Assembly (NCBI GenBank): GCA_900088475.1
Contig: FLMG01000914.1
Location: 21,399-85,398 of the forward strand
Source of the DNA: Hyphochytrium catenoides
Taxonomy: Eukaryota > Protista > Hyphochytriomycota
Length of the DNA: 64,000 nucleotides
Direction of reading: 5' to 3'
Shown here piece by piece: positions 1-63,190 of the stretch. Under the pieces are notes generated by a model that saw nothing but the letters and a program-made list of their open reading frames with translations, did not search any database and was not told the origin of the DNA. Position 1 is the first letter of the stretch. Each line of letters opens with the position of its first letter. Position numbers and translations under genes: made by a program.

Positions 1-1805
1 TCGTATCATGGCAAGAAATTCTGAGGAGGGTCTTCCAAAAGCTTCATTGCTAGACCTTATTTGCTTTCATGCTCTTAAGAAAGAGCTCTGTCTCTTCTCC
101 TTCATCTCTATATCTCGTGTCGTTGCCTCTCTCGCATCACTTTATCGCTCTGGCTAGACCCGAATGGCACTCTATGTCCTTAACGATTGCCTTCGCGGGG
201 ACCCGTGGATGTGCATGGGACAGCGAGATCGTTGGCTATTCCTCCAGTACATAACTTTGAAGCATTAGCTGTTGATTGCTGATGATGACGAGTTTGATAA
301 GTAGAGGGAACACTTCGTCAGTCACGCTACGTCTCCATTAGAATGGATGTCTGCGCGTCCATGGTGGCCCTTCGCCAGCGAAGAAAGACTGAGGAGTATC
401 ATAGATTCTCAGCCGATACATCCAGATGAAGCGAAAACCCCTAAGCACTGGAGGTTTTGGGCCAAGGCAGAGCCCTAGCTAGAGACGTCTACGCTGAGTG
501 AACACTTTTTCCGAGAACAACTTCCCCTGCATGCGCCAGAAGAGGGACTTCCGTTCACAGGCACCACTGAACACAATGAAGTAAAACTGTTAACGCGAGG
601 AAGATGGGATTACCTCTAAGATCCGAGCGAGGAGATTATATCTCTTTCACCTATCATCGCAAGCATCAGCCATCACCCAGCACGACAGAGACCAAGCTCG
701 TCCCTTGAATGCCCTATGCTCTCCCGTACACCTAGCATGGCAGGCGCTTGTCAAAAACAGTCAATATACGCCTCTCATCAATAAGAAAAGGCACTGTGGC
801 CGGAAAGTGGAGTGCTTCACACGAGAGATCCAGAGACGGAGCTCGTGTGAGGCACAACATTGCCAGAGATTCTCTATTGCAAAACTCTTTTGCCCCGGTC
901 TTCGGTCTTCGAAATCAGGAAAGAGATCAGAAGCACGATTTTACTTTGCGGATCCCAAGTATAGTAAGTACAGTGGTTAGCGCAGACTTGCACGATTCTA
1001 TACTTAGCGGCGATCATTATATTTAGTCAGAGTTTCTCCTGTAGAAATACTTGCCCGCCGCGAGGGGTACCTTGCAAGTATTTGACAGATTTCTCTGTTA
1101 ATTTACGAGGAAGGTGGTTGTGTAGTAAACACAAAAGACAGGCCTCGTTTTTACCCTCCCCCTCCCCTCCTCTTTCACTCAGCAAATGTTTGATCAATTC
1201 CCCCATATTTCCCATATGTCAATTTGTGAATTATTGACACCTGAGTTGAAGTTATTTGTCCTCAGTCCGCCGCCCTATTTTGAAGCACAAGAACCAGCAT
1301 CAACCCCCTTCCACATAGAATATCTAGTCAACTCTGTCTTTACTTATTATACATTATTAACAATATCCTAGCTACTCTTCTCCCCTCTGGCTCGTACTCC
1401 TGACTTTGAGCCTCATCTTCCTCGCCTTTTCACACGAAACTTACTTCAAGCTTAGCTCCTATTCGTATGCCGCCCCATGGTCGTTTCAAAGCATTGAGCA
1501 TTGATCTTTAGAGCGTCAGGTCTGTCTATCACCCGATAATTAACCGCCTTAAGGTTGCCTCGTCCGACCTTCCTGATCCTCCTCCACCCAAAGAGAGAGA
1601 GAGAGTCAGTCTGTCTCTCTCTCTCTTTCTCTCTCTTAGCATGGGAGGACTAACATTCAATATGGCGATTTAGGCTCTGTCTTGCCCTTTTCTCCTGTCT
1701 CTCTTACTTTCCCACGCCTAAGAATCGAAGAATCAGATGATGATGAGTCTGTCTTTCTTCTTCATTGCCTCTTTCATCTGAGAGGTAAGAAGCGAAGATG
1801 GCAAT

Positions 1806-9443: not shown

Positions 9444-10497
9444 AAGAAAGAGGCTAGTATAAAAGTTGAAGAGAGAGAAAGACTTTTCGGCAGTCGCTAA
9501 AGGGACATTTTTGGTCTGTCTTCGTAACATCCCCTACCTTGTGCGTCTCTCTCTCTCTCTTCTCTCTCTTCCTCTCTCTTTTTCATCTTCTCTCTCTTGC
9601 TCTCTCTTCGTCCTTCTTCTACATTGGCAGGTCTATGAGGCTGAAGGTGCCCTCCCTTGCTCGTTGGTCCCCATCTTCCTGGACCTGGTACTGGACTCTA
9701 CACGGTTAATAGATCACTTCTCCTGGAACCGGTTAGTCGCCCCTTTCTCTCTCTCTCTCTCTTTCCTTCTCTCTCTCTCCCTCTCTCTCTCTTCTCTTTC
9801 TCTCAAAATGTCTCTCGGGCGTGCACTCCTCCCTATCGGTTGCTCTGTCGCCGCCTGTCTCTGTCGACATTTTTCTCTCTCTTCGTCTCTCTGTCTCTCT
9901 ATCTCTTCGCCTCTCCTGACCCTATCCCTCTCCCTTCCCCCCGGCCATTTACTGTCTGCATCTCTCCTGGCCAGCCATGAGCGGCACATGACTCCGGAGA
10001 AGTTTGCTGCAGGTTTGGTTGATGATCTGAATGTCTCTCCCAAGTTCATTCCTCGGATCGCAGAAGAGATCAGACGCCAGGTGGCGGCAGCAGAGAAAGA
10101 AATCGAGGTAAAAGTTCTGCTTTTTTTCTTTCTCTCTCTCTCTCTCTCTCTCTCTCATTCACTCTCGCCCTCTCTCTTCCTCTCTCCTCTCTTTCTCCCT
10201 TTTCTTTCTTTCTCTCTCCCTTCCTTCTCTTCTCCCGCTTCCTTTTCGCTCGCAAACATTGAGCGTTCGTGTTCTCTCCTTTCTCTCTCTCCCATGACCT
10301 GGAAGTACGCGGCAAGTGTTGGGTCTGGGATAGGAGGCCTGCATCCCATTCGCCTGAACCTGCGCGTCAAGGACACAATTCTCATAGATCAGTTTGAGGT
10401 CAGGCTTTCAGCGTAATGATGGCTAAAACGAGAAGGGGAGACCAAGAGAAAGAGAAGGAAAGAGAGAGAGGGAGAGAGAGACACGCACACAGAGGCA

Positions 10498-39047: not shown

Positions 39048-40088
39048 ATGGCAACAATGGAACTGCGTAACATCCTATCACATCTCAAGCTGGCCTACCC
39101 AGCGGTCCTTACAGCGGGACCAGACCCTCATCAGACTCATTTAGCCTACAGAGTAGGCACCATCCCGGCTGTCTCCCATTTGAGAAAGAGAGCCTTCCAG
39201 GCCGTTTACGCAGAAGTCAGTGGTGCTACAAAGTATCTGGTTGCCCTATACGATGGCGTCCAGCTGTTCGTCGCAGGAGGCCTCGCGGGCGCTGTCAGCA
39301 GGACCGTTACGGCCCCTATGGACAGAGTAAAAGTTGTCCTCCAGGCTGGAGCAGCTCCAAACTCTGGAAATGGGGCTATTCGCGGGGTGGTGCGAGATAT
39401 TTATCTAGACGGCGGTTGGCGTGCATTCTTTAAAGGAAATGGCGTGAATGTGCTGAAGATTGCACCTGAGACAGCGATCAAGTTCTATACAAACAACCAT
39501 CTGACCGCACTCATCGCTTCTGATCTCTCCTCAATCTCTATCACGGAAAGGCTGGTGGCAGGCGCACTCACAGGCATCATCGCTCAGACCTCCATCTACC
39601 CGCTAGAGATCGTGAAGACAAGGCTAGCACTCTCTAAGAATGGAGAATATAGAGGAATTATGGGCTGCCTGAAGGGGACAGTGGCGAAGAACGGCGTCTC
39701 TGCTCTGTTTAGAGGCTATGTCCCATCTGTTGTGGGTATCATCCCATACGCAGGAGTAGAATTGGCGGTCTTTAACAGCTTAAAGGACTGGTACGATCGC
39801 CAGTACGGCGTCAAACCTTCGGTGCCAGCACTGCTGCTGTTTGGCTGCACGGCCAGCGTCTCTGGGCAGCTGGTGGCCTATCCTCTTAACCTTGTGCGTA
39901 CCAAGATGCAGGCGCAAGGCATGCAAGGACGGCCAGTGGAGTACAAAGGCATGACAGACTGCTTTATGAAGGTGCTGAAGGCTCACGGTGTGAGGGGACT
40001 GTACAGAGGGATCCTACCGGGCTTTGCAAAGACATTGCCAGCGATCAGTATCTCTTACACAGTCTTTGAAACTCTGAAGACGAAGTAA
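39048..40088 (+). CDS. Mitochondrial carrier, SCaMC/ATP-Mg-Pi (SLC25A23/24/25/41)-like, intronless, no EF-hands
   Basis: Three PxD/ExxK/R repeats (PMDRVK, PLEIVKTR, PLNLVRTK); AGAVSRTVTAP; GNGVNVLKIAPETAIKF; GIIPYAGVELAVF. Confidence 0.92.
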   Translation: MATMELRNILSHLKLAYPAVLTAGPDPHQTHLAYRVGTIPAVSHLRKRAFQAVYAEVSGATKYLVALYDGVQLFVAGGLAGAVSRTVTAPMDRVKVVLQAGAAPNSGNGAIRGVVRDIYLDGGWRAFFKGNGVNVLKIAPETAIKFYTNNHLTALIASDLSSISITERLVAGALTGIIAQTSIYPLEIVKTRLALSKNGEYRGIMGCLKGTVAKNGVSALFRGYVPSVVGIIPYAGVELAVFNSLKDWYDRQYGVKPSVPALLLFGCTASVSGQLVAYPLNLVRTKMQAQGMQGRPVEYKGMTDCFMKVLKAHGVRGLYRGILPGFAKTLPAISISYTVFETLKTK

Positions 40089-56056: not shown

Positions 56057-58411
56057 TTAGAATACATCCTCTTCCTCCTCCTCCTCGGCCTGCTGGCCAT
56101 ACTGGCTCTTTATCACCTCCATCTCGCTCTGAATCTTCTCTAACCGCGCCAGATCCAGCCCTTCCACACCCATCTTCTGCAAGACAACGAGCAACTGAAC
56201 GACTTTCTCTCCAACAAACACTGTGGACGGCGCACGGAGACTCTTTCCTCTTGCCATCTTCCCAAATACTCGGAGCTCTTCCTCAGCCATTGCCATCGAG
56301 GCGTCAGCAAGGACTACAGCCGAATTGACAAGCTCTCTGCCCTTCTTCTCTAGCTCCTGTGGGATATTGAAGCGCCTCATTCTCTCTATGTCCACCTTAT
56401 ACTCCGCGCTCTTGAATATCTTATGGTTGGCTTTGTACGCCTCTTTTAGCAGCGCGATGTACTTGTCAACCACCTGCGGCTTGGTCAGCGCTGTGTCCTT
56501 GTACACAGTTGGCGCCGCTAAAATCTGCGCCATTCTGCTGTCTAGCTGGGTCATATAATGCTCCAGCACGGACATTGTCCATAGCTTCTGATAGCATCTT
56601 CCGGCAGCTTCTCTATCGGAGAGGGAGAAGTACATCTCCCCTGTCTCTTTGCTCTTCATCGTCAGCCGACTGGCCCACGTCTCCTCATAAGCATGTCCCA
56701 TTAGCAAGCCATAGCTCTCTAACCGTGGCAGCGCCTCTCGCACCAGCGCCAGAACCTCGTCTACCGAGCCAAACTCTGCCTCACAGACACGATAGGTGAG
56801 CTCTTTGATGGCCTCTCTATGCTGAACAATCTTTTGATTCTGTTCCTTTCTCGCTCTCCTCTCGAGCTGTTGCACGAGGGTCAGCCCTCCAACATCCTTC
56901 TGTGTCGTGTTGTCCACATCCGCAAACAGGCTCTCCACTTCCGCCTCCGTCTGAGCAAGCTCCAGCGCCATTGTATCTTCTAGTTGTGGAGACTCTGGCG
57001 AGGATCCGTCCCTGAGAGAAGCGGGGAAAGCAGGAGATGAACAGGATAGAGCTTGATGAGAAGTATGGAGAGAGCCTTGAGACCCCGCTCCGGCCATTGC
57101 CGTCAAGCTGACAGTACTTTGTCTCGAGATGACAGCTTGATGTTGCATCACCAGTGCATACAGGTGCTGCAGGACCTGCGCACTGTCTTGCTCTGTGACA
57201 GAAGGGCTAGGAGGAGAAGGGAGAGAGGCAGCAGCCGAGGTGTCGTTCGGAGAGACCTCGTCTGGGGTGTCTAAGTAAGAACAGTCCACGCCTTCCACTC
57301 TCATCTTCTGTTGCACCTGTTCCTTCGGCATTCCCATAGATAATAGCTTGAAATATTTGGAAAAAGCGGGGTCATCCTTCACGAGCATGGGAGCCGCCTC
57401 TGGCACTGCAGGAGGGAGAAGAGACCGTAGCAGATGAGAGCTCATGGCTGGGAGAGAGCGAGACGTTGAAGGAGACTCTGTCAAGCTTTGTCTGGTGGAT
57501 TGTCGATGAAGACTGCTCGTGCTGTGGCTCCTCTCCCACGTGGGTTCCCGAATAAGTTCACTGCCACGGCCCAGCCCTAGACCACGCATTGACGACTGTC
57601 GCACAGCCCTTTCTACCTCAGAACGAAGATTCTCAAGCTGCTGCTGAAGCTCTGTCACGCTCTGCATGTCAGAGAAGCTCTGCTGGCTCTGAAGGCGGCT
57701 ACTTTCCTCTGCAGCCTGGCTTGAGAGGTGCCCTTCTTTGAGTCGAGCGATCTCACATTCTATCTGCTGCATCTTGGATAACTGCACGGTCTCAATCTCT
57801 TCCATCTTCTTTCCTAAGTGCTGCAGTCTCTCCTTCTCTTTCTCAGTCAATACCGACACGCCTTTGTCATCCATGGGAGTGGCTAGAGGCACAGCCCGAG
57901 CACCGCTTCCCTTCATTGCCTTGGGCACCTCCGTGTCTATTGGCTCTGTTGTTATCGTTCCCTTCAGCTTCCTACCGCTCTTCTTCCTCTGCGGCCTCCC
58001 CGCTGGCGCCACTTCTTCCTCTTCCTCTTGTTCTTCATCACTAAGCCCCGGAGTATCAGTGTGATATTCATCATCCTCGCTGTCAGAGGCGCACTCATCC
58101 TGGTTCTTCTGCGAGAGAGCCATGCAGAGCGTTCGGTGCCGTTGGAAGTCCAGCCTCTGGCATGATCTACTGCAGTAAGACGTTACTAGGCAGATGGCGC
58201 ACTTGACGGCTTCTTCCGCTGGCTTATCCCCGCAGAACTGGCAGGCACCAGCCTCGTCCTCCTCTTCAATATCATCATCTCCTTGCTCCGGTGGAGAGAA
58301 GAAGGACGCTGAGTTGGGCCTGGCGATGAAGGAGCCGCCTTTGAGTCTCATCAGGAGCTCATCTTCGCTATCACTGTCACTGTCTGCATCCGTCCAGGCG
58401 GCTCCTGGCAT
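56057..58411 (-). CDS. 784-aa protein: MYND zinc finger, coiled coil, CCDC53/DUF2360-like motif, CHUP1-like C-terminal domain
   Basis: CQFC..KCAICLVTSYCSRSCQRLDFQRHRTLC (MYND); VKDDPAFSKYFKLLSMGMPKEQVQQKMRVEGVDCSYLDTPD (DUF2360-like); the helical C-terminus resembles the CHUP1 C-terminal region (see findings). The single long ORF is certain; the C-terminal domain call is less so. Confidence 0.85.
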   Translation of the reverse strand: MPGAAWTDADSDSDSEDELLMRLKGGSFIARPNSASFFSPPEQGDDDIEEEDEAGACQFCGDKPAEEAVKCAICLVTSYCSRSCQRLDFQRHRTLCMALSQKNQDECASDSEDDEYHTDTPGLSDEEQEEEEEVAPAGRPQRKKSGRKLKGTITTEPIDTEVPKAMKGSGARAVPLATPMDDKGVSVLTEKEKERLQHLGKKMEEIETVQLSKMQQIECEIARLKEGHLSSQAAEESSRLQSQQSFSDMQSVTELQQQLENLRSEVERAVRQSSMRGLGLGRGSELIREPTWERSHSTSSLHRQSTRQSLTESPSTSRSLPAMSSHLLRSLLPPAVPEAAPMLVKDDPAFSKYFKLLSMGMPKEQVQQKMRVEGVDCSYLDTPDEVSPNDTSAAASLPSPPSPSVTEQDSAQVLQHLYALVMQHQAVISRQSTVSLTAMAGAGSQGSLHTSHQALSCSSPAFPASLRDGSSPESPQLEDTMALELAQTEAEVESLFADVDNTTQKDVGGLTLVQQLERRARKEQNQKIVQHREAIKELTYRVCEAEFGSVDEVLALVREALPRLESYGLLMGHAYEETWASRLTMKSKETGEMYFSLSDREAAGRCYQKLWTMSVLEHYMTQLDSRMAQILAAPTVYKDTALTKPQVVDKYIALLKEAYKANHKIFKSAEYKVDIERMRRFNIPQELEKKGRELVNSAVVLADASMAMAEEELRVFGKMARGKSLRAPSTVFVGEKVVQLLVVLQKMGVEGLDLARLEKIQSEMEVIKSQYGQQAEEEEEEDVF

Positions 58412-59913
58412 CTTTCCTCTACTGTTCAGGTCTCAATGTACGCGCAGGTCTTCCGCTCGAGCGGGGCTGACGGCTCCTTCTGAGCGATGATTGTCAGCTC
58501 TGAACTGCCACTACTTAGCTCAAAAGGTTGAAAGACACATCCATCAGACACTCTACTTCTTGAAGACTGAGCTTTGGAGAAGGAGCAAGGCGCGCAAGCG
58601 GAAGCGGGCAGAGCCGCGGCTTCAGGCACAGAGTTGACGTGAGAAGCAGTGCGGAGAACAGGAGATGGCGGTGTCAGCCCAGTGGTAGGAAGAGAACAAA
58701 AGGCGATTCGGGTGTGAGAGTCTCAGAGACGCCAGGCAACAGACAAACATCTAGAAAAAACGGGTAGGAGATAGACCAGTCCCTCCTTTTGTTCTCCTGG
58801 TTCTTTGTCCTAATCTCTCTCTCTTTCCGCTTGGACTCCCTCTTCACGGCCCTCTCTTCTGTCAACCTCTCTTTCCTCTCGCTCTTCTTCGCTTCTATCG
58901 TCCGCTGTTCCCTTCCCTCTTTATTGTCTCTCTCTCTCTCCCCTCACAGTGGACTCTCTCTTTCTCTCTCTCTCTCTCTCTCNNNNNNNNNNNNNNNNNN
59001 NNNNNNNNNNNTCTCTCTCTCGCTGCCGCTGCGGTGACTCCCACCACTGGACCTCGCATCCTTTCTTGACGTCCGTTACCGGCCAGTGTAGCTCCCCCTT
59101 CACTTCCAGCAAGAACGGACCTTGTGAATTTACCTAAAGAATAACCGCCTCGCCCAGTTGACACATCCTATTCCCTTCAGCTAGGATATAATTAATAGAG
59201 CCCGGGTGTTTGTAGCTCTTTCTAACCTGATCCTACGCCGCATGGGGTTACCCCCAACAACTTCGCACCTCTCACCTGGACAAGGTAGGGTAAGGTCCCT
59301 TCTTGAAATTGGTGGGCGGGGAAACCTCCGCTGTCTCGTCCTCCCCTGCCATCTGGCGCCACCCCCCGTTGGGCTGGGCGATCAAAAACCATCTCACGGC
59401 CTCGCGCGCACCAGCCAATCAAACCCTCCGAATGGCGTCCGAAAATTTTTAGAACTAAGAAGTGTAGCATTATTGACATTTTGCCATATTGCCATAGCTC
59501 ACAATATGAGGCTGTTCGTATGTTGTTAGTGTTAAGTGGACCCGATAACGCTGTAAAATAACCTTGCTATGGACTGAATTGACAGCCAAGACTGTCAAGA
59601 TTTGGAATCTTGGCAAGTTTGTGTGGCTGTTGTTGTGGCGAAAGAAATTCTTGGACTCAGAGTCGCAGTGTCTACTGACGCTTGGGCCTGGGGACCTTCT
59701 GCGACACTAACTCTGCCCTATTCCTATTCCGAGTAGCACAGATATTTATAAGGAATAGTGACCACCATTACTCAGAGATAGACCGCCACCGTTTATCCTC
59801 AGTCTGGGGGTGGGTGGGACCAGGGTCCAAGATTCCATCAAAACTTTGAGGCGGCTGCCCTGTCTCCTCCTCTTTCTCTCTCTCTCTCTCTCNNNNNNNN
59901 NNNNNNNNNNNNN

Positions 59914-59949
<36 letters not shown>

Positions 59950-61041: not shown

Positions 61042-61075
<34 letters not shown>

Positions 61076-63190
61076 NNNNNNNNNNNNNNNNNNNNNNNNN
61101 NNNNNNNNNNNAGAGAGAGAGTAGATCTACAACGGAGGAGTAAGACTAGAGTTATAATAAAGATCCCACAGAAGAGCACCAAGCGATCTGGCCAAAATCT
61201 TCTCCTTATGATCCTGAAACAGAGCAAAAAAAAAGTATGGAAGAACATCGACGAGTCGCTCTTCTTCCGCTCCATGAAAGGCGAGCTTCCTATTCTATAA
61301 AAGGAAAGGGATTTGGTAGCACCTCAAGCTTGCTTCTTCAGCTTCATCCGCGGTCAGGGAACAGAGATCGATGTGCATAAAGGGGCGAGATGGCCAGAGG
61401 AGAGAGCGGAAGTATGTGCATATCCCCGATGATATATTAGAACTTCCTCCTTCTCCTTGGTCCTGCGCGGTGCATGTCATAGCGGGCTAAAGGACGCAGT
61501 GGATACTCGGACTGGATCTTTCCCTCTTCTCTGGGACAGGATCTTTCTCTTGTGTTTGTTATGTCTTCTTCCATCCTCTGCCAGGATCCAGAGCTGATGC
61601 ACCATCGATCACGGTCAACATCTTCGGTCTGAGGCCTTTGTCCCAATCCTCGCCCCCGCCCCTGTCATGATGGCCCAGGGTCGTAACTTTCGAATGCTCT
61701 TGTGCACCTGCTGAGACTCGCATCAACGATGATGCCTTCTCGCCTCTTCTCTTCTCATCATTGTCTCTTTCGAAACCTGGTGTGCAAAGTCATCAGCTCC
61801 TTTTTTTTTATCTTCTTCTCTGCGACGTTTGCCAGAGCCACTGGGTAACTCTAGTCTCTTGAAAGAGAATGGGCTGGAAAGGCTTACAAAAAAGCGCTAT
61901 CGGGCCCCCGTGTTGCATGTCAGCTTAGCTTTTCTTTCTCAGATTGTGGCCTTATTACTTCTTGCAGCGCGATCTTTATAAATTCCTTCTCTTCGAAAGC
62001 TCGGCGACTCTTGCCAACTGCCTCTCTGACGCTGCCCGCTCCTTTCCTTCTTTGTGAGTGCGGCTCTTAAGCTTCTTCTCCTCCAGTTCTCTAGGCCTGA
62101 ACAATGTTCATGACGAGCAGTGGAGGACCAAGCTTCTTTATCTATGAATATTTGTTGTCCACTCTATGTAAACGCATCGCTTTGACCCTCTGCCAAAGCT
62201 TTGTACAGGAAGGAGCATGTGTATCTTTTGACCGCTGGATCATTGGCTCTCCTCCTAGAGAAACTAAACAGGTGCACGGCACTCCGGACTCCTCATCATA
62301 AGTAAACGGCTCCATCCTCGGAGTCTCTCTTAATATAAAAGCTACTGCTCCTTTAGATGAAGAGACAAGACCAGCAGAAAGTTCATTGCGCAACAGGGGC
62401 GGCACCCTGGGGAGCGATGCTGTTACTATGAAGAAGATGCTGTTACTATGAAGAAGATAACTTTTGATAGTTCGTTGGAGCGTGTCTGTGAGCTGTCAGG
62501 AGTAATGTCTGTTAACTATCAAGCACAAGTGTCTCAAGAGCTTTTATTATAGCGGGCTCAGCCCATAGTCCTGAACCTCTTATGTCTTGTCTAGCTTCGC
62601 CGTTGATTCATAGCTAGCGCACTTCCTTCTTTCTACGCCCTTTCTCGTCACCGTGGTGCTATCAATGCCTGGCAATGCAAGCCCGAAGGCCGGGATGAAC
62701 CTCATCAATTGTGTCATCTTAGGAGTTGGAATGTCTTAGCTAGCTCTACTGAGATATCAGCGCTAGCCTTTCTCTTTCGTCTGCCGCCGTCAAACCATCA
62801 CGACTTAAAAAGTTTCTGGGGACGCGGAATGAAAGGATGACGAGCTCTCCTCTTGAGTCTTCGCCAGTATTAAAGGAGGAAACGGAGCTGCCTGGCAGGA
62901 GATTGAGCGGGGGAAATGCTGACTTCCATGATGCCACGGTCGCTTCCTCCTCCATAGAATTAGAGAGCGACTGACCTCATCTACATAGTAGATCTAGCGG
63001 TCGGTCTGTTGATAGAGGAGAACGGTTCCTTCCCTTGATTCCCCTTGTTTACGTTTTCTAATGCTCTCGCGGGAGGGATTGGGCATTCGATCGTCAGCTT
63101 AGCTGGTGGCGCCATCGTCGCCTGTCTCACAGCGAAGAAGACAGAAAAAGACTTACCTTGACGGTGCTGCTGAGTTGCTCTAGGCACCAT
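60330..63190 (-). other. Possible fragmented or decayed multi-exon hypothetical gene
   Basis: A series of short minus-strand coding-like segments with some splice-like boundaries, but stops interrupt every frame. No family recognised. Confidence 0.25.
62416..62458. repeat. Perfect 20-bp tandem duplication (gatgctgttactatgaagaa x2)
   Basis: Direct reading of the sequence. Confidence 0.9.

Follow-up and report, generated by a model that had tools for sequence, protein, structure and literature searches.

Is the C-terminal actin polymerization module of CHUP1 confined to plants? CHUP1 has been called a plant-specific class of actin polymerization factor tied to chloroplast movement (10.1101/2020.01.14.905984), a description with which later citing papers concur, and among the papers listed in our literature search we found none that connects CHUP1 with oomycetes, haptophytes, diatoms or stramenopiles. 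The question is raised by an open reading frame (ORF) in a 64,000-nucleotide stretch of Hyphochytrium catenoides DNA (contig FLMG01000914.1, positions 21,399 to 85,398; referred to here as the window), the C-terminal region of which had been likened to that of Arabidopsis CHUP1 in an initial annotation. Our data indicate that the ORF is an intact gene, that it belongs to a protein family occurring outside plants, and that, as modeled, its C-terminal domain has the fold of the CHUP1 structures 8WAF and 8WAG over the whole domain. With a probability of roughly 60%, we propose that the ORF encodes a cytoskeletal regulator, the C-terminal domain of which (approximately 257 residues) is very distantly homologous to that of streptophyte CHUP1/IPGA1 (PF26700) and would, by analogy, assemble actin. 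The features concerned are the following, in window coordinates.

56057..58411, minus strand: complete intronless ORF, 784 amino acids plus stop codon (ORF reading; both ends match oomycete orthologues)
56120..56890, minus strand: CHUP1_C-like all-helical domain, residues 508-764 (predicted structure)
56912..56986, minus strand: conserved helix, residues 476-500, followed by a low-confidence linker of ~10 residues (model; orthologue alignment)
56666..56668, minus strand: codon of Arg582, one of three columns invariant in 31 family sequences, aligning with CHUP1 R820 (hhalign)

As first described, the ORF runs from ATG to stop without interruption and forms a single exon of 784 codons. The two ends of the predicted protein, an N-terminal DSDSDSEDEL and a C-terminal EEEEEEDVF, line up with the ends of its oomycete orthologues in the alignment, and since both ends match we take the ORF to be a complete gene. 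In a search of sequencing runs, all words of the gene were contained in DNA runs of one organism, and soil and rhizosphere metagenomes contained small shares of them.

CHUP1 residues 716-982 form an all-helical dimer with partial likeness to formin homology domain FH2 (10.1101/2020.01.14.905984). Two independent AlphaFold models were compared with it: an AlphaFold2 model of residues 476-784 of the window protein (7-sequence alignment, mean predicted local distance difference test (pLDDT) 85.8), and a model of a relative from Prymnesium (P0039; 28-sequence alignment, pLDDT 95.8). Neither was copied from CHUP1, because 8WAF and 8WAG were released in January 2024 and no templates were used. When 350,542 PDB chains were searched with Foldseek, three CHUP1 C-terminal chains ranked first for the window model, and the match to 8waf (E 3.6e-3, probability 1.00) had a template modeling (TM) score of 0.63 by target over 267 alignment columns. 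Nearly all other matches of this model had TM scores of 0.1-0.3, the top one, at 0.35, being a small designed repeat protein. The Prymnesium model matched the CHUP1 C-terminal structures at TM 0.65 by target. Across both models, matches other than CHUP1 were nearly always at or below 0.30 and reached a maximum of 0.44 with small designed helical proteins. The CHUP1 C-terminal crystal structures were also at the top for both models among 48,161 PDB representatives compared with an exhaustive structural aligner; for both, the CHUP1 match stood 4-6 Z units above every other PDB chain. The match spans 94-97% of the CHUP1 crystal chain, with residues 33..289 of the window model aligned to CHUP1 757..982.

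A shape search of the ESM Atlas with the window model gave a similar picture. Its two best rows are streptophyte clusters (TM 0.63-0.67, 248-250 residues aligned), one of them 'Protein CHUP1, chloroplastic', 97% of the members of which carry PF26700 (IPGAL1_C), and the other also containing IPGAL1_C; by the third row the TM score drops to 0.45. A feature search of the same atlas gave no usable match. Comparing an AlphaFold model with the CHUP1 C-terminal structure by Foldseek, the check that the initial annotation had recommended, thus returned that structure as the top match in the PDB from two template-free models. Upstream of the domain, the window model contains a helix at model residues 2-25 and a stretch of pLDDT below 50 at model residues 23-32. 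This helix (residues 476-500, with F496 invariant in the alignment of orthologues) and its linker may correspond, by position, to CHUP1 716-755, a short N-terminal helix and disordered linker that contacts the partner subunit (10.1101/2020.01.14.905984).

We found that sequence-only alignments place the two domains in the same register. The plant profile used for this purpose was built outward from an 81-residue stretch of CHUP1, through fragments carrying PF26700, to ten plant loci, with a spliced reference and a reference-anchored alignment; it is shallow (9 reconstructed loci plus fragments) and contains no secondary-structure term. Aligned to this profile with hhalign, a 28-sequence protist alignment (A4) scored 27.3 (P = 0.0035) over 191 columns, nearly the whole domain. 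None of 333 protist alignments shuffled in eight-column blocks reached that score (mean 14.3, standard deviation 2.65, maximum 26.2), the eight highest-scoring shuffles aligned at most 74 columns, and the reversed protist alignment scored 17.8. For a single comparison specified in advance, these values suggest a statistical signal that is weak but real.

In all hhalign runs model residue 58 is placed on CHUP1 782, Arg582 on R820 and Pro684 on P902, and the window segment 'LVNSAVVLADASMAMAEEEL' on CHUP1 'IKLSSVQLARKYMKRVAYEL'. The resulting offsets, 724 at the N-terminal end and 693 at Pro684/P902, are the exact end anchors of the structural alignment; the corresponding offsets for the Prymnesium model are 758 and 721. 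Three columns (R, L and A) are invariant in 31 protist sequences (A3), with the Arg on the plant-conserved R820 and the Ala on the invariant Ala of 'REAA'. CHUP1 numbering was checked on 8waf_A, where chain index 69 is Arg (R820) and 207 is Phe (F958), in agreement with the CHUP1 preprint. Both residues matter in CHUP1: neither R820D, at a predicted actin contact, nor F958D, at a dimer contact, leaves any activity in vitro or any chloroplast movement in vivo (10.1101/2020.01.14.905984). Arg582 may be the equivalent of R820, as judged from an alignment of low confidence. In the A4 run, likewise of low confidence, F958 aligns with an Ile of the Prymnesium protein that corresponds to window Val742 and is hydrophobic, not aromatic.

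The initial annotation had paired five CHUP1 strings with segments of the window protein. All five strings are real and are present in order in PDB chain 8waf_A. The second, third and fourth pairs were reproduced by hhalign with three family alignments, and the offsets 724 and 693 of pairs 2 and 3 are the anchors of the independent structural alignment. Pair 5 was recovered approximately, in one hhalign run, and pair 1 is covered by the structural alignment but not by that of hhalign. The annotation had also regarded the central WPE/ERAVL motifs of CHUP1 as not conserved. For WPE, which is absent, this is correct; R820, the Arg in 'DERAVLK', is nevertheless aligned with the family-invariant Arg582, and 'REAAFEY' of CHUP1 aligns with 'REAAGRCY' of the window protein.

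Several results weigh against homology with CHUP1, or against a role in actin assembly. Sequence identity between the window domain and CHUP1_C is 12-16%, as low as had been anticipated. PDB sequence searches with the single protein, a 7-sequence profile and a 31-sequence profile did not find CHUP1. A family hidden Markov model (HMM) compared with CHUP1 residues 798-878 was not significant relative to 3000 shuffles, and an HMM of plant sequences scored family members at 5.0 bits or less, inside the shuffle range. The hhalign P value varies with the protist alignment (0.0035 for A4, 0.057 for A2 and 0.12 for A3); with a comparison limited to the central plant fragments it is 0.099, improving only with the whole-domain plant profile, and HH-suite's own probability for the match between protist and plant domains is 0.5-9%. 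In precomputed annotations from a newer Pfam, plant fragments carry PF26700 and the oomycete orthologues carry PF01753 and PF10152 only; the Pfam model for the plant domain misses the variant described here (the Pfam-A set scanned here is without the PF26700 model, with 0 families found in plant fragment P0116, and its scans are silent on IPGAL1_C). No long polyproline (FH1-like) run is present in the aligned window protein and oomycete orthologues. The plant paralogue IPGA1, with the same C-terminal domain, is microtubule-associated (PMC6793458). Among the sequencing runs listed, none of those containing the gene was an RNA run. Set beside these points, the top-ranking fold match and the weak, co-linear profile match in structural register support the divergent, non-plant CHUP1_C-like domain that the initial annotation had proposed. 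A match to CHUP1_C was obtained, and we infer that homology, not convergence, is the probable explanation.

We found orthologues by full-length search in six oomycetes (Aphanomyces, Globisporangium, Pythium insidiosum, Achlya and two Saprolegnia species), with identity to the window protein of 33-39%. Along the entire protein identity is 33-37%, over the C-terminal 309 residues it is 36-39%, and 73 positions are invariant across the window protein and all six. The orthologues have in common the N-terminal DSDSDDEL, a MYND finger, a coiled coil, the CCDC53-type motif, 'VMQHQ', the C-terminal domain and an acidic tail. In public data the Globisporangium splendens orthologue (P0002, 1055 amino acids) goes by the name 'peptidyl-tRNA hydrolase 2, partial'. 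Its N-terminus is longer by about 290 residues and its MYND finger is incomplete; the gene model was probably merged or mis-spliced.

A word-indexed homologue search with residues 480-784 alone gave no match; the family was found with the full-length query and with an exhaustive profile search, which returned 70 matches at E <= 1e-3 among 1.84 billion representatives. The distant matches that carry names are from the haptophytes Prymnesium parvum and Diacronema lutheri, the others being proteins from metagenomes or assembled sequencing runs. Overall, the family comprises about 70 relatives in oomycetes, haptophytes and marine eukaryotes, and no plant protein was among the 20 of the 70 profile matches that were looked up (4 of these with an organism name). 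A long polyproline tract lies directly upstream of the domain in haptophyte and marine members (P0028, P0029, P0044, P0061, P0062, P0067 and P0070). The layout is formin-like, with APPPL repeats and runs of 9-11 prolines, in P0061 and P0044 (Prymnesium, Diacronema), P0065, P0028, P0029, P0067 and P0070. Some distant members have an N-terminal PH or GYF domain too, and P0063 has a CCDC53-type motif and a short proline stretch together.

The remaining features of the window protein flank the C-terminal domain.

58124..58243, minus strand: MYND zinc finger, residues 57-96 (Pfam PF01753, 7.3e-8)
57596..57850, minus strand: predicted coiled coil, about residues 188-272 (weak generic coiled-coil Pfam matches; aligned with oomycete orthologues)
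57242..57391, minus strand: single CCDC53-type motif, residues 341-390 (LVKDDPAFSKYFKLLSMGMPKEQVQQKMRVEGVD..LDTPDEVSPND; Pfam PF10152)
57137..57163, minus strand: short conserved motif LYALVMQHQ, residues 417-425 (orthologue alignment)
56060..56086, minus strand: acidic C-terminal tail EEEEEEDVF, residues 776-784 (family alignments)

The MYND finger noticed in the initial annotation is confirmed by the Pfam scan (32.8 bits against a cut-off of 22.7), and its zinc ligands, read from the sequence, are complete (8/8: C57-x2-C60-x10-C71-x2-C74-x5-C80-x3-C84-x7-H92-x3-C96). In a PDB sequence search it matches the solved MYND domains of ETO/CBFA2T1 and DEAF1, with E values from 5e-4 upwards. The coiled coil is probably a dimerization segment; scanned alone against Pfam, it gave only weak generic coiled-coil matches and none to CCDC53. 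The DDPxFxKYFKLLxMG-type CCDC53 motif was also correctly recognized, with a PF10152 score of about 50 bits (50.2-50.5) against a gathering cut-off of 24.6. When parts of the protein were scanned separately, the whole of this score was due to a 42-residue motif at residues 340-381, corresponding to model positions 106-147, and a full CCDC53 module in the central region was rejected. Since the score is confined to residues 340-381 and the coiled coil is generic, the window protein carries the C-terminal motif of CCDC53 and is not a CCDC53 orthologue. The wiring to MYND and a WASH/formin-type motif proposed at the outset holds for the MYND finger and the CCDC53-type motif, while 'formin-type' applies only by way of the partial FH2 resemblance of CHUP1.

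A separate gene of Phytophthora oleae (P0007, 502 amino acids), named by one source as a WASH1 WAHD domain protein, matches CCDC53 over the full length of the model (E 4.1e-53, positions 1-147, in two matched stretches) and is probably the true CCDC53-type subunit of oomycetes, distinct from the orthologues of the window gene. The CCDC53-type motif occurs in three copies in 5 of the 6 oomycete orthologues, the first copy being truncated in P0006, and once in the window protein. A search for solved structures with the motif found none, and among the papers listed by our literature searches there was no relevant account of it or of its function; a possible resemblance to the villin headpiece was dropped because the spacing differs. 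Between this motif and the C-terminal domain, the pattern L[FY]A[LMI][VL]MQHQ is kept in all oomycete orthologues, and M422, Q423 and H424 of the LYALVMQHQ motif are invariant. At their C-termini all members of the protist family have an acidic run and then D-x-hydrophobic (EDVF in the window protein, DDVL in oomycetes, and DDEI or DDAI at the C-termini of the haptophyte-type members P0028, P0039 and P0067), which may be a terminal docking motif.

In CHUP1, a C-terminal fragment with the upstream polyproline promotes polymerization of profilin-bound actin and severs filaments, and activity is abolished without the polyproline region (10.1101/2020.01.14.905984). By analogy, we hypothesize that the window protein would dimerize through its coiled coil, and maybe also through the conserved helix at residues 476-500 that immediately precedes the domain. 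Together, the two C-terminal domains of the dimer would then engage actin, with Arg582 (CHUP1 R820) among the contacts, and would favor the assembly of filaments at a particular site. Docking of the N-terminal MYND finger on a partner with a proline-rich peptide might set the place of assembly. The CCDC53-type motif, situated where CHUP1, like the haptophyte and marine relatives, has FH1-like polyproline, would probably be accessory, serving in subunit delivery or in the recruitment of a partner or cofactor. Analogy with characterized proteins is the basis of each of these putative roles, from dimerization through actin binding and polymerization to those of the MYND finger and the CCDC53-type motif.

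The alternative that survives best, although we judge it unlikely, is that the domain is homologous to CHUP1_C/IPGAL1_C and does not assemble actin: the protein would be microtubule-associated, or a scaffold or dimerization module, as an adaptor made of MYND finger, coiled coil and CCDC53-type motif. IPGA1, which has the same plant domain, binds cortical microtubules (PMC6793458), actin polymerization has been shown for CHUP1 itself only, and the window protein and its oomycete orthologues are without the polyproline that CHUP1 needs. However, it is not established that IPGA1 binds microtubules through its C-terminal domain, the protist family has an invariant Arg that appears to match the one on which the actin activity of CHUP1 depends, and many members keep an FH1-like polyproline just upstream of the domain, a hallmark of profilin-actin delivery.

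Less probable again is convergence, in which a generic elongated helical bundle would superpose on CHUP1_C with neither ancestry nor function in common. HMM-to-sequence similarity that is not significant would fit this explanation, as would two of the three hhalign runs (P = 0.057 and 0.12). A generic bundle is difficult to reconcile with a match covering 94-97% of the crystal chain and standing 4-6 Z units above all other PDB chains for two independent models, with sequence-only alignments in structural register at both ends, with the coincidence of a few invariant residues, or with the domain position and upstream polyproline in common with CHUP1. That the domain has decayed into an inactive relic, inactivity being a possibility raised in the initial annotation, is very improbable. 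In favor of it, the WPE motif of plant CHUP1 is absent and the CCDC53-type motif occurs once in the window protein, compared with three times in oomycetes; but the ORF is intact over its 784 codons, the predicted model is confident, and no other part of the protein is as well conserved as the domain, with 36-39% identity across oomycetes, 73 positions invariant in the window protein and six oomycete orthologues, and the CHUP1-essential Arg kept.

If the window domain is a true homologue of the CHUP1/IPGA1 C-terminal domain, as we favor, then the origin of the module moves well outside streptophytes and the module is uncoupled from chloroplast positioning. An unstudied actin (or cytoskeletal) assembly system would, furthermore, exist in groups to which bloom-forming algae and major pathogens of crops and fish belong. 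The plant CHUP1/IPGA1 domain is known; what is new is a non-plant variant in new architectures, and the module, so far assigned to plants alone, probably has a much longer history and a much wider distribution. Since the CCDC53-type motif here takes the place of the FH1 tract, the orphan C-terminal motif of the WASH subunit CCDC53 also gains a testable context. A broader proposal, advanced tentatively and with more doubt than confidence, is that CHUP1-type factors are not a plant invention and represent an old, widespread fourth class of actin nucleator, with a formin-like arrangement of polyproline and the C-terminal domain, in stramenopiles and haptophytes. In the oomycete lineage, polyproline would have been replaced by repeats of the CCDC53 motif, which would become a candidate actin/profilin-delivery or nucleator-coupling element linking two actin-assembly systems.

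The window is eukaryotic, with a G+C content of about 50%. An ordinary neighbor gene, an ORF of 346 residues at 39048-40088 (plus strand), contains three repeats of the mitochondrial-carrier type (Pfam Mito_carr, E 5.6e-67), and an ORF at 9466-10416 (plus strand) with a partial SNF5/SMARCB1 domain (E 3.7e-10) is probably one exon of a larger gene. Neither the window protein nor the neighboring mitochondrial carrier was found by exact-sequence look-up in a protein collection. The window contains 12 N-runs; those at 58963-59011, 59875-59945 and 61055-61111 (assembly gaps, 21-36 bases) lie just upstream of the 5' end of the gene, in or next to long (TC)n/(GA)n microsatellites.

Most of the known MYND proteins act in transcriptional co-repression or in dynein assembly. 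The complete C4-C2HC finger is common to the window protein and MYND-finger adaptors (ETO/CBFA2T1, DEAF1, ZMYND10/11), whereas the surrounding context is unrelated, and to our knowledge no MYND protein is joined to a CHUP1-type domain. With the WASH subunit CCDC53/WASHC3 (PF10152), the window protein has in common the C-terminal motif of ~42 residues (DDPxFxKYFKL..MG.P...v..KM..eG.D) alone, and the N-terminal coiled coil of that subunit is not matched. Formins, with their FH1-FH2 arrangement, resemble many family members in having a targeting region, a polyproline tract and a C-terminal helical module that probably dimerizes. A direct relationship to FH2 (PF02181) was rejected, however, as the window protein has no Pfam FH2 match and FH2 chains reach TM scores of 0.10-0.22 in Foldseek.

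The plant CHUP1 paralogues IPGA1, IPGAL1 and IPGAL2 have a C-terminal domain of what is probably the same family and predicted coiled coils upstream; they differ in being plant-only, in being without a MYND finger or CCDC53-type motif and, for IPGA1, in associating with microtubules. Relative to CHUP1 of Arabidopsis thaliana (8WAF/8WAG; PF26700 IPGAL1_C), the window domain is at 12-16% identity, is missed by HMMs, is without the WPE motif, and is ~31 residues longer (the central helical hairpin accounts for ~20 of these, and the part that precedes the conserved Arg for ~11). The window protein has neither polyproline nor the chloroplast-anchoring N-terminus of CHUP1, and its family occurs in non-photosynthetic organisms of the oomycete lineage and in haptophytes, not in streptophytes. 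The likeness, in turn, consists of the C-terminal position of the domain in both proteins, a short helix and flexible linker upstream of it, the conserved Arg582 that appears to fall on R820, perhaps the hydrophobic V742 at the position of F958, and, in relatives of the window protein, polyproline immediately upstream of the domain.

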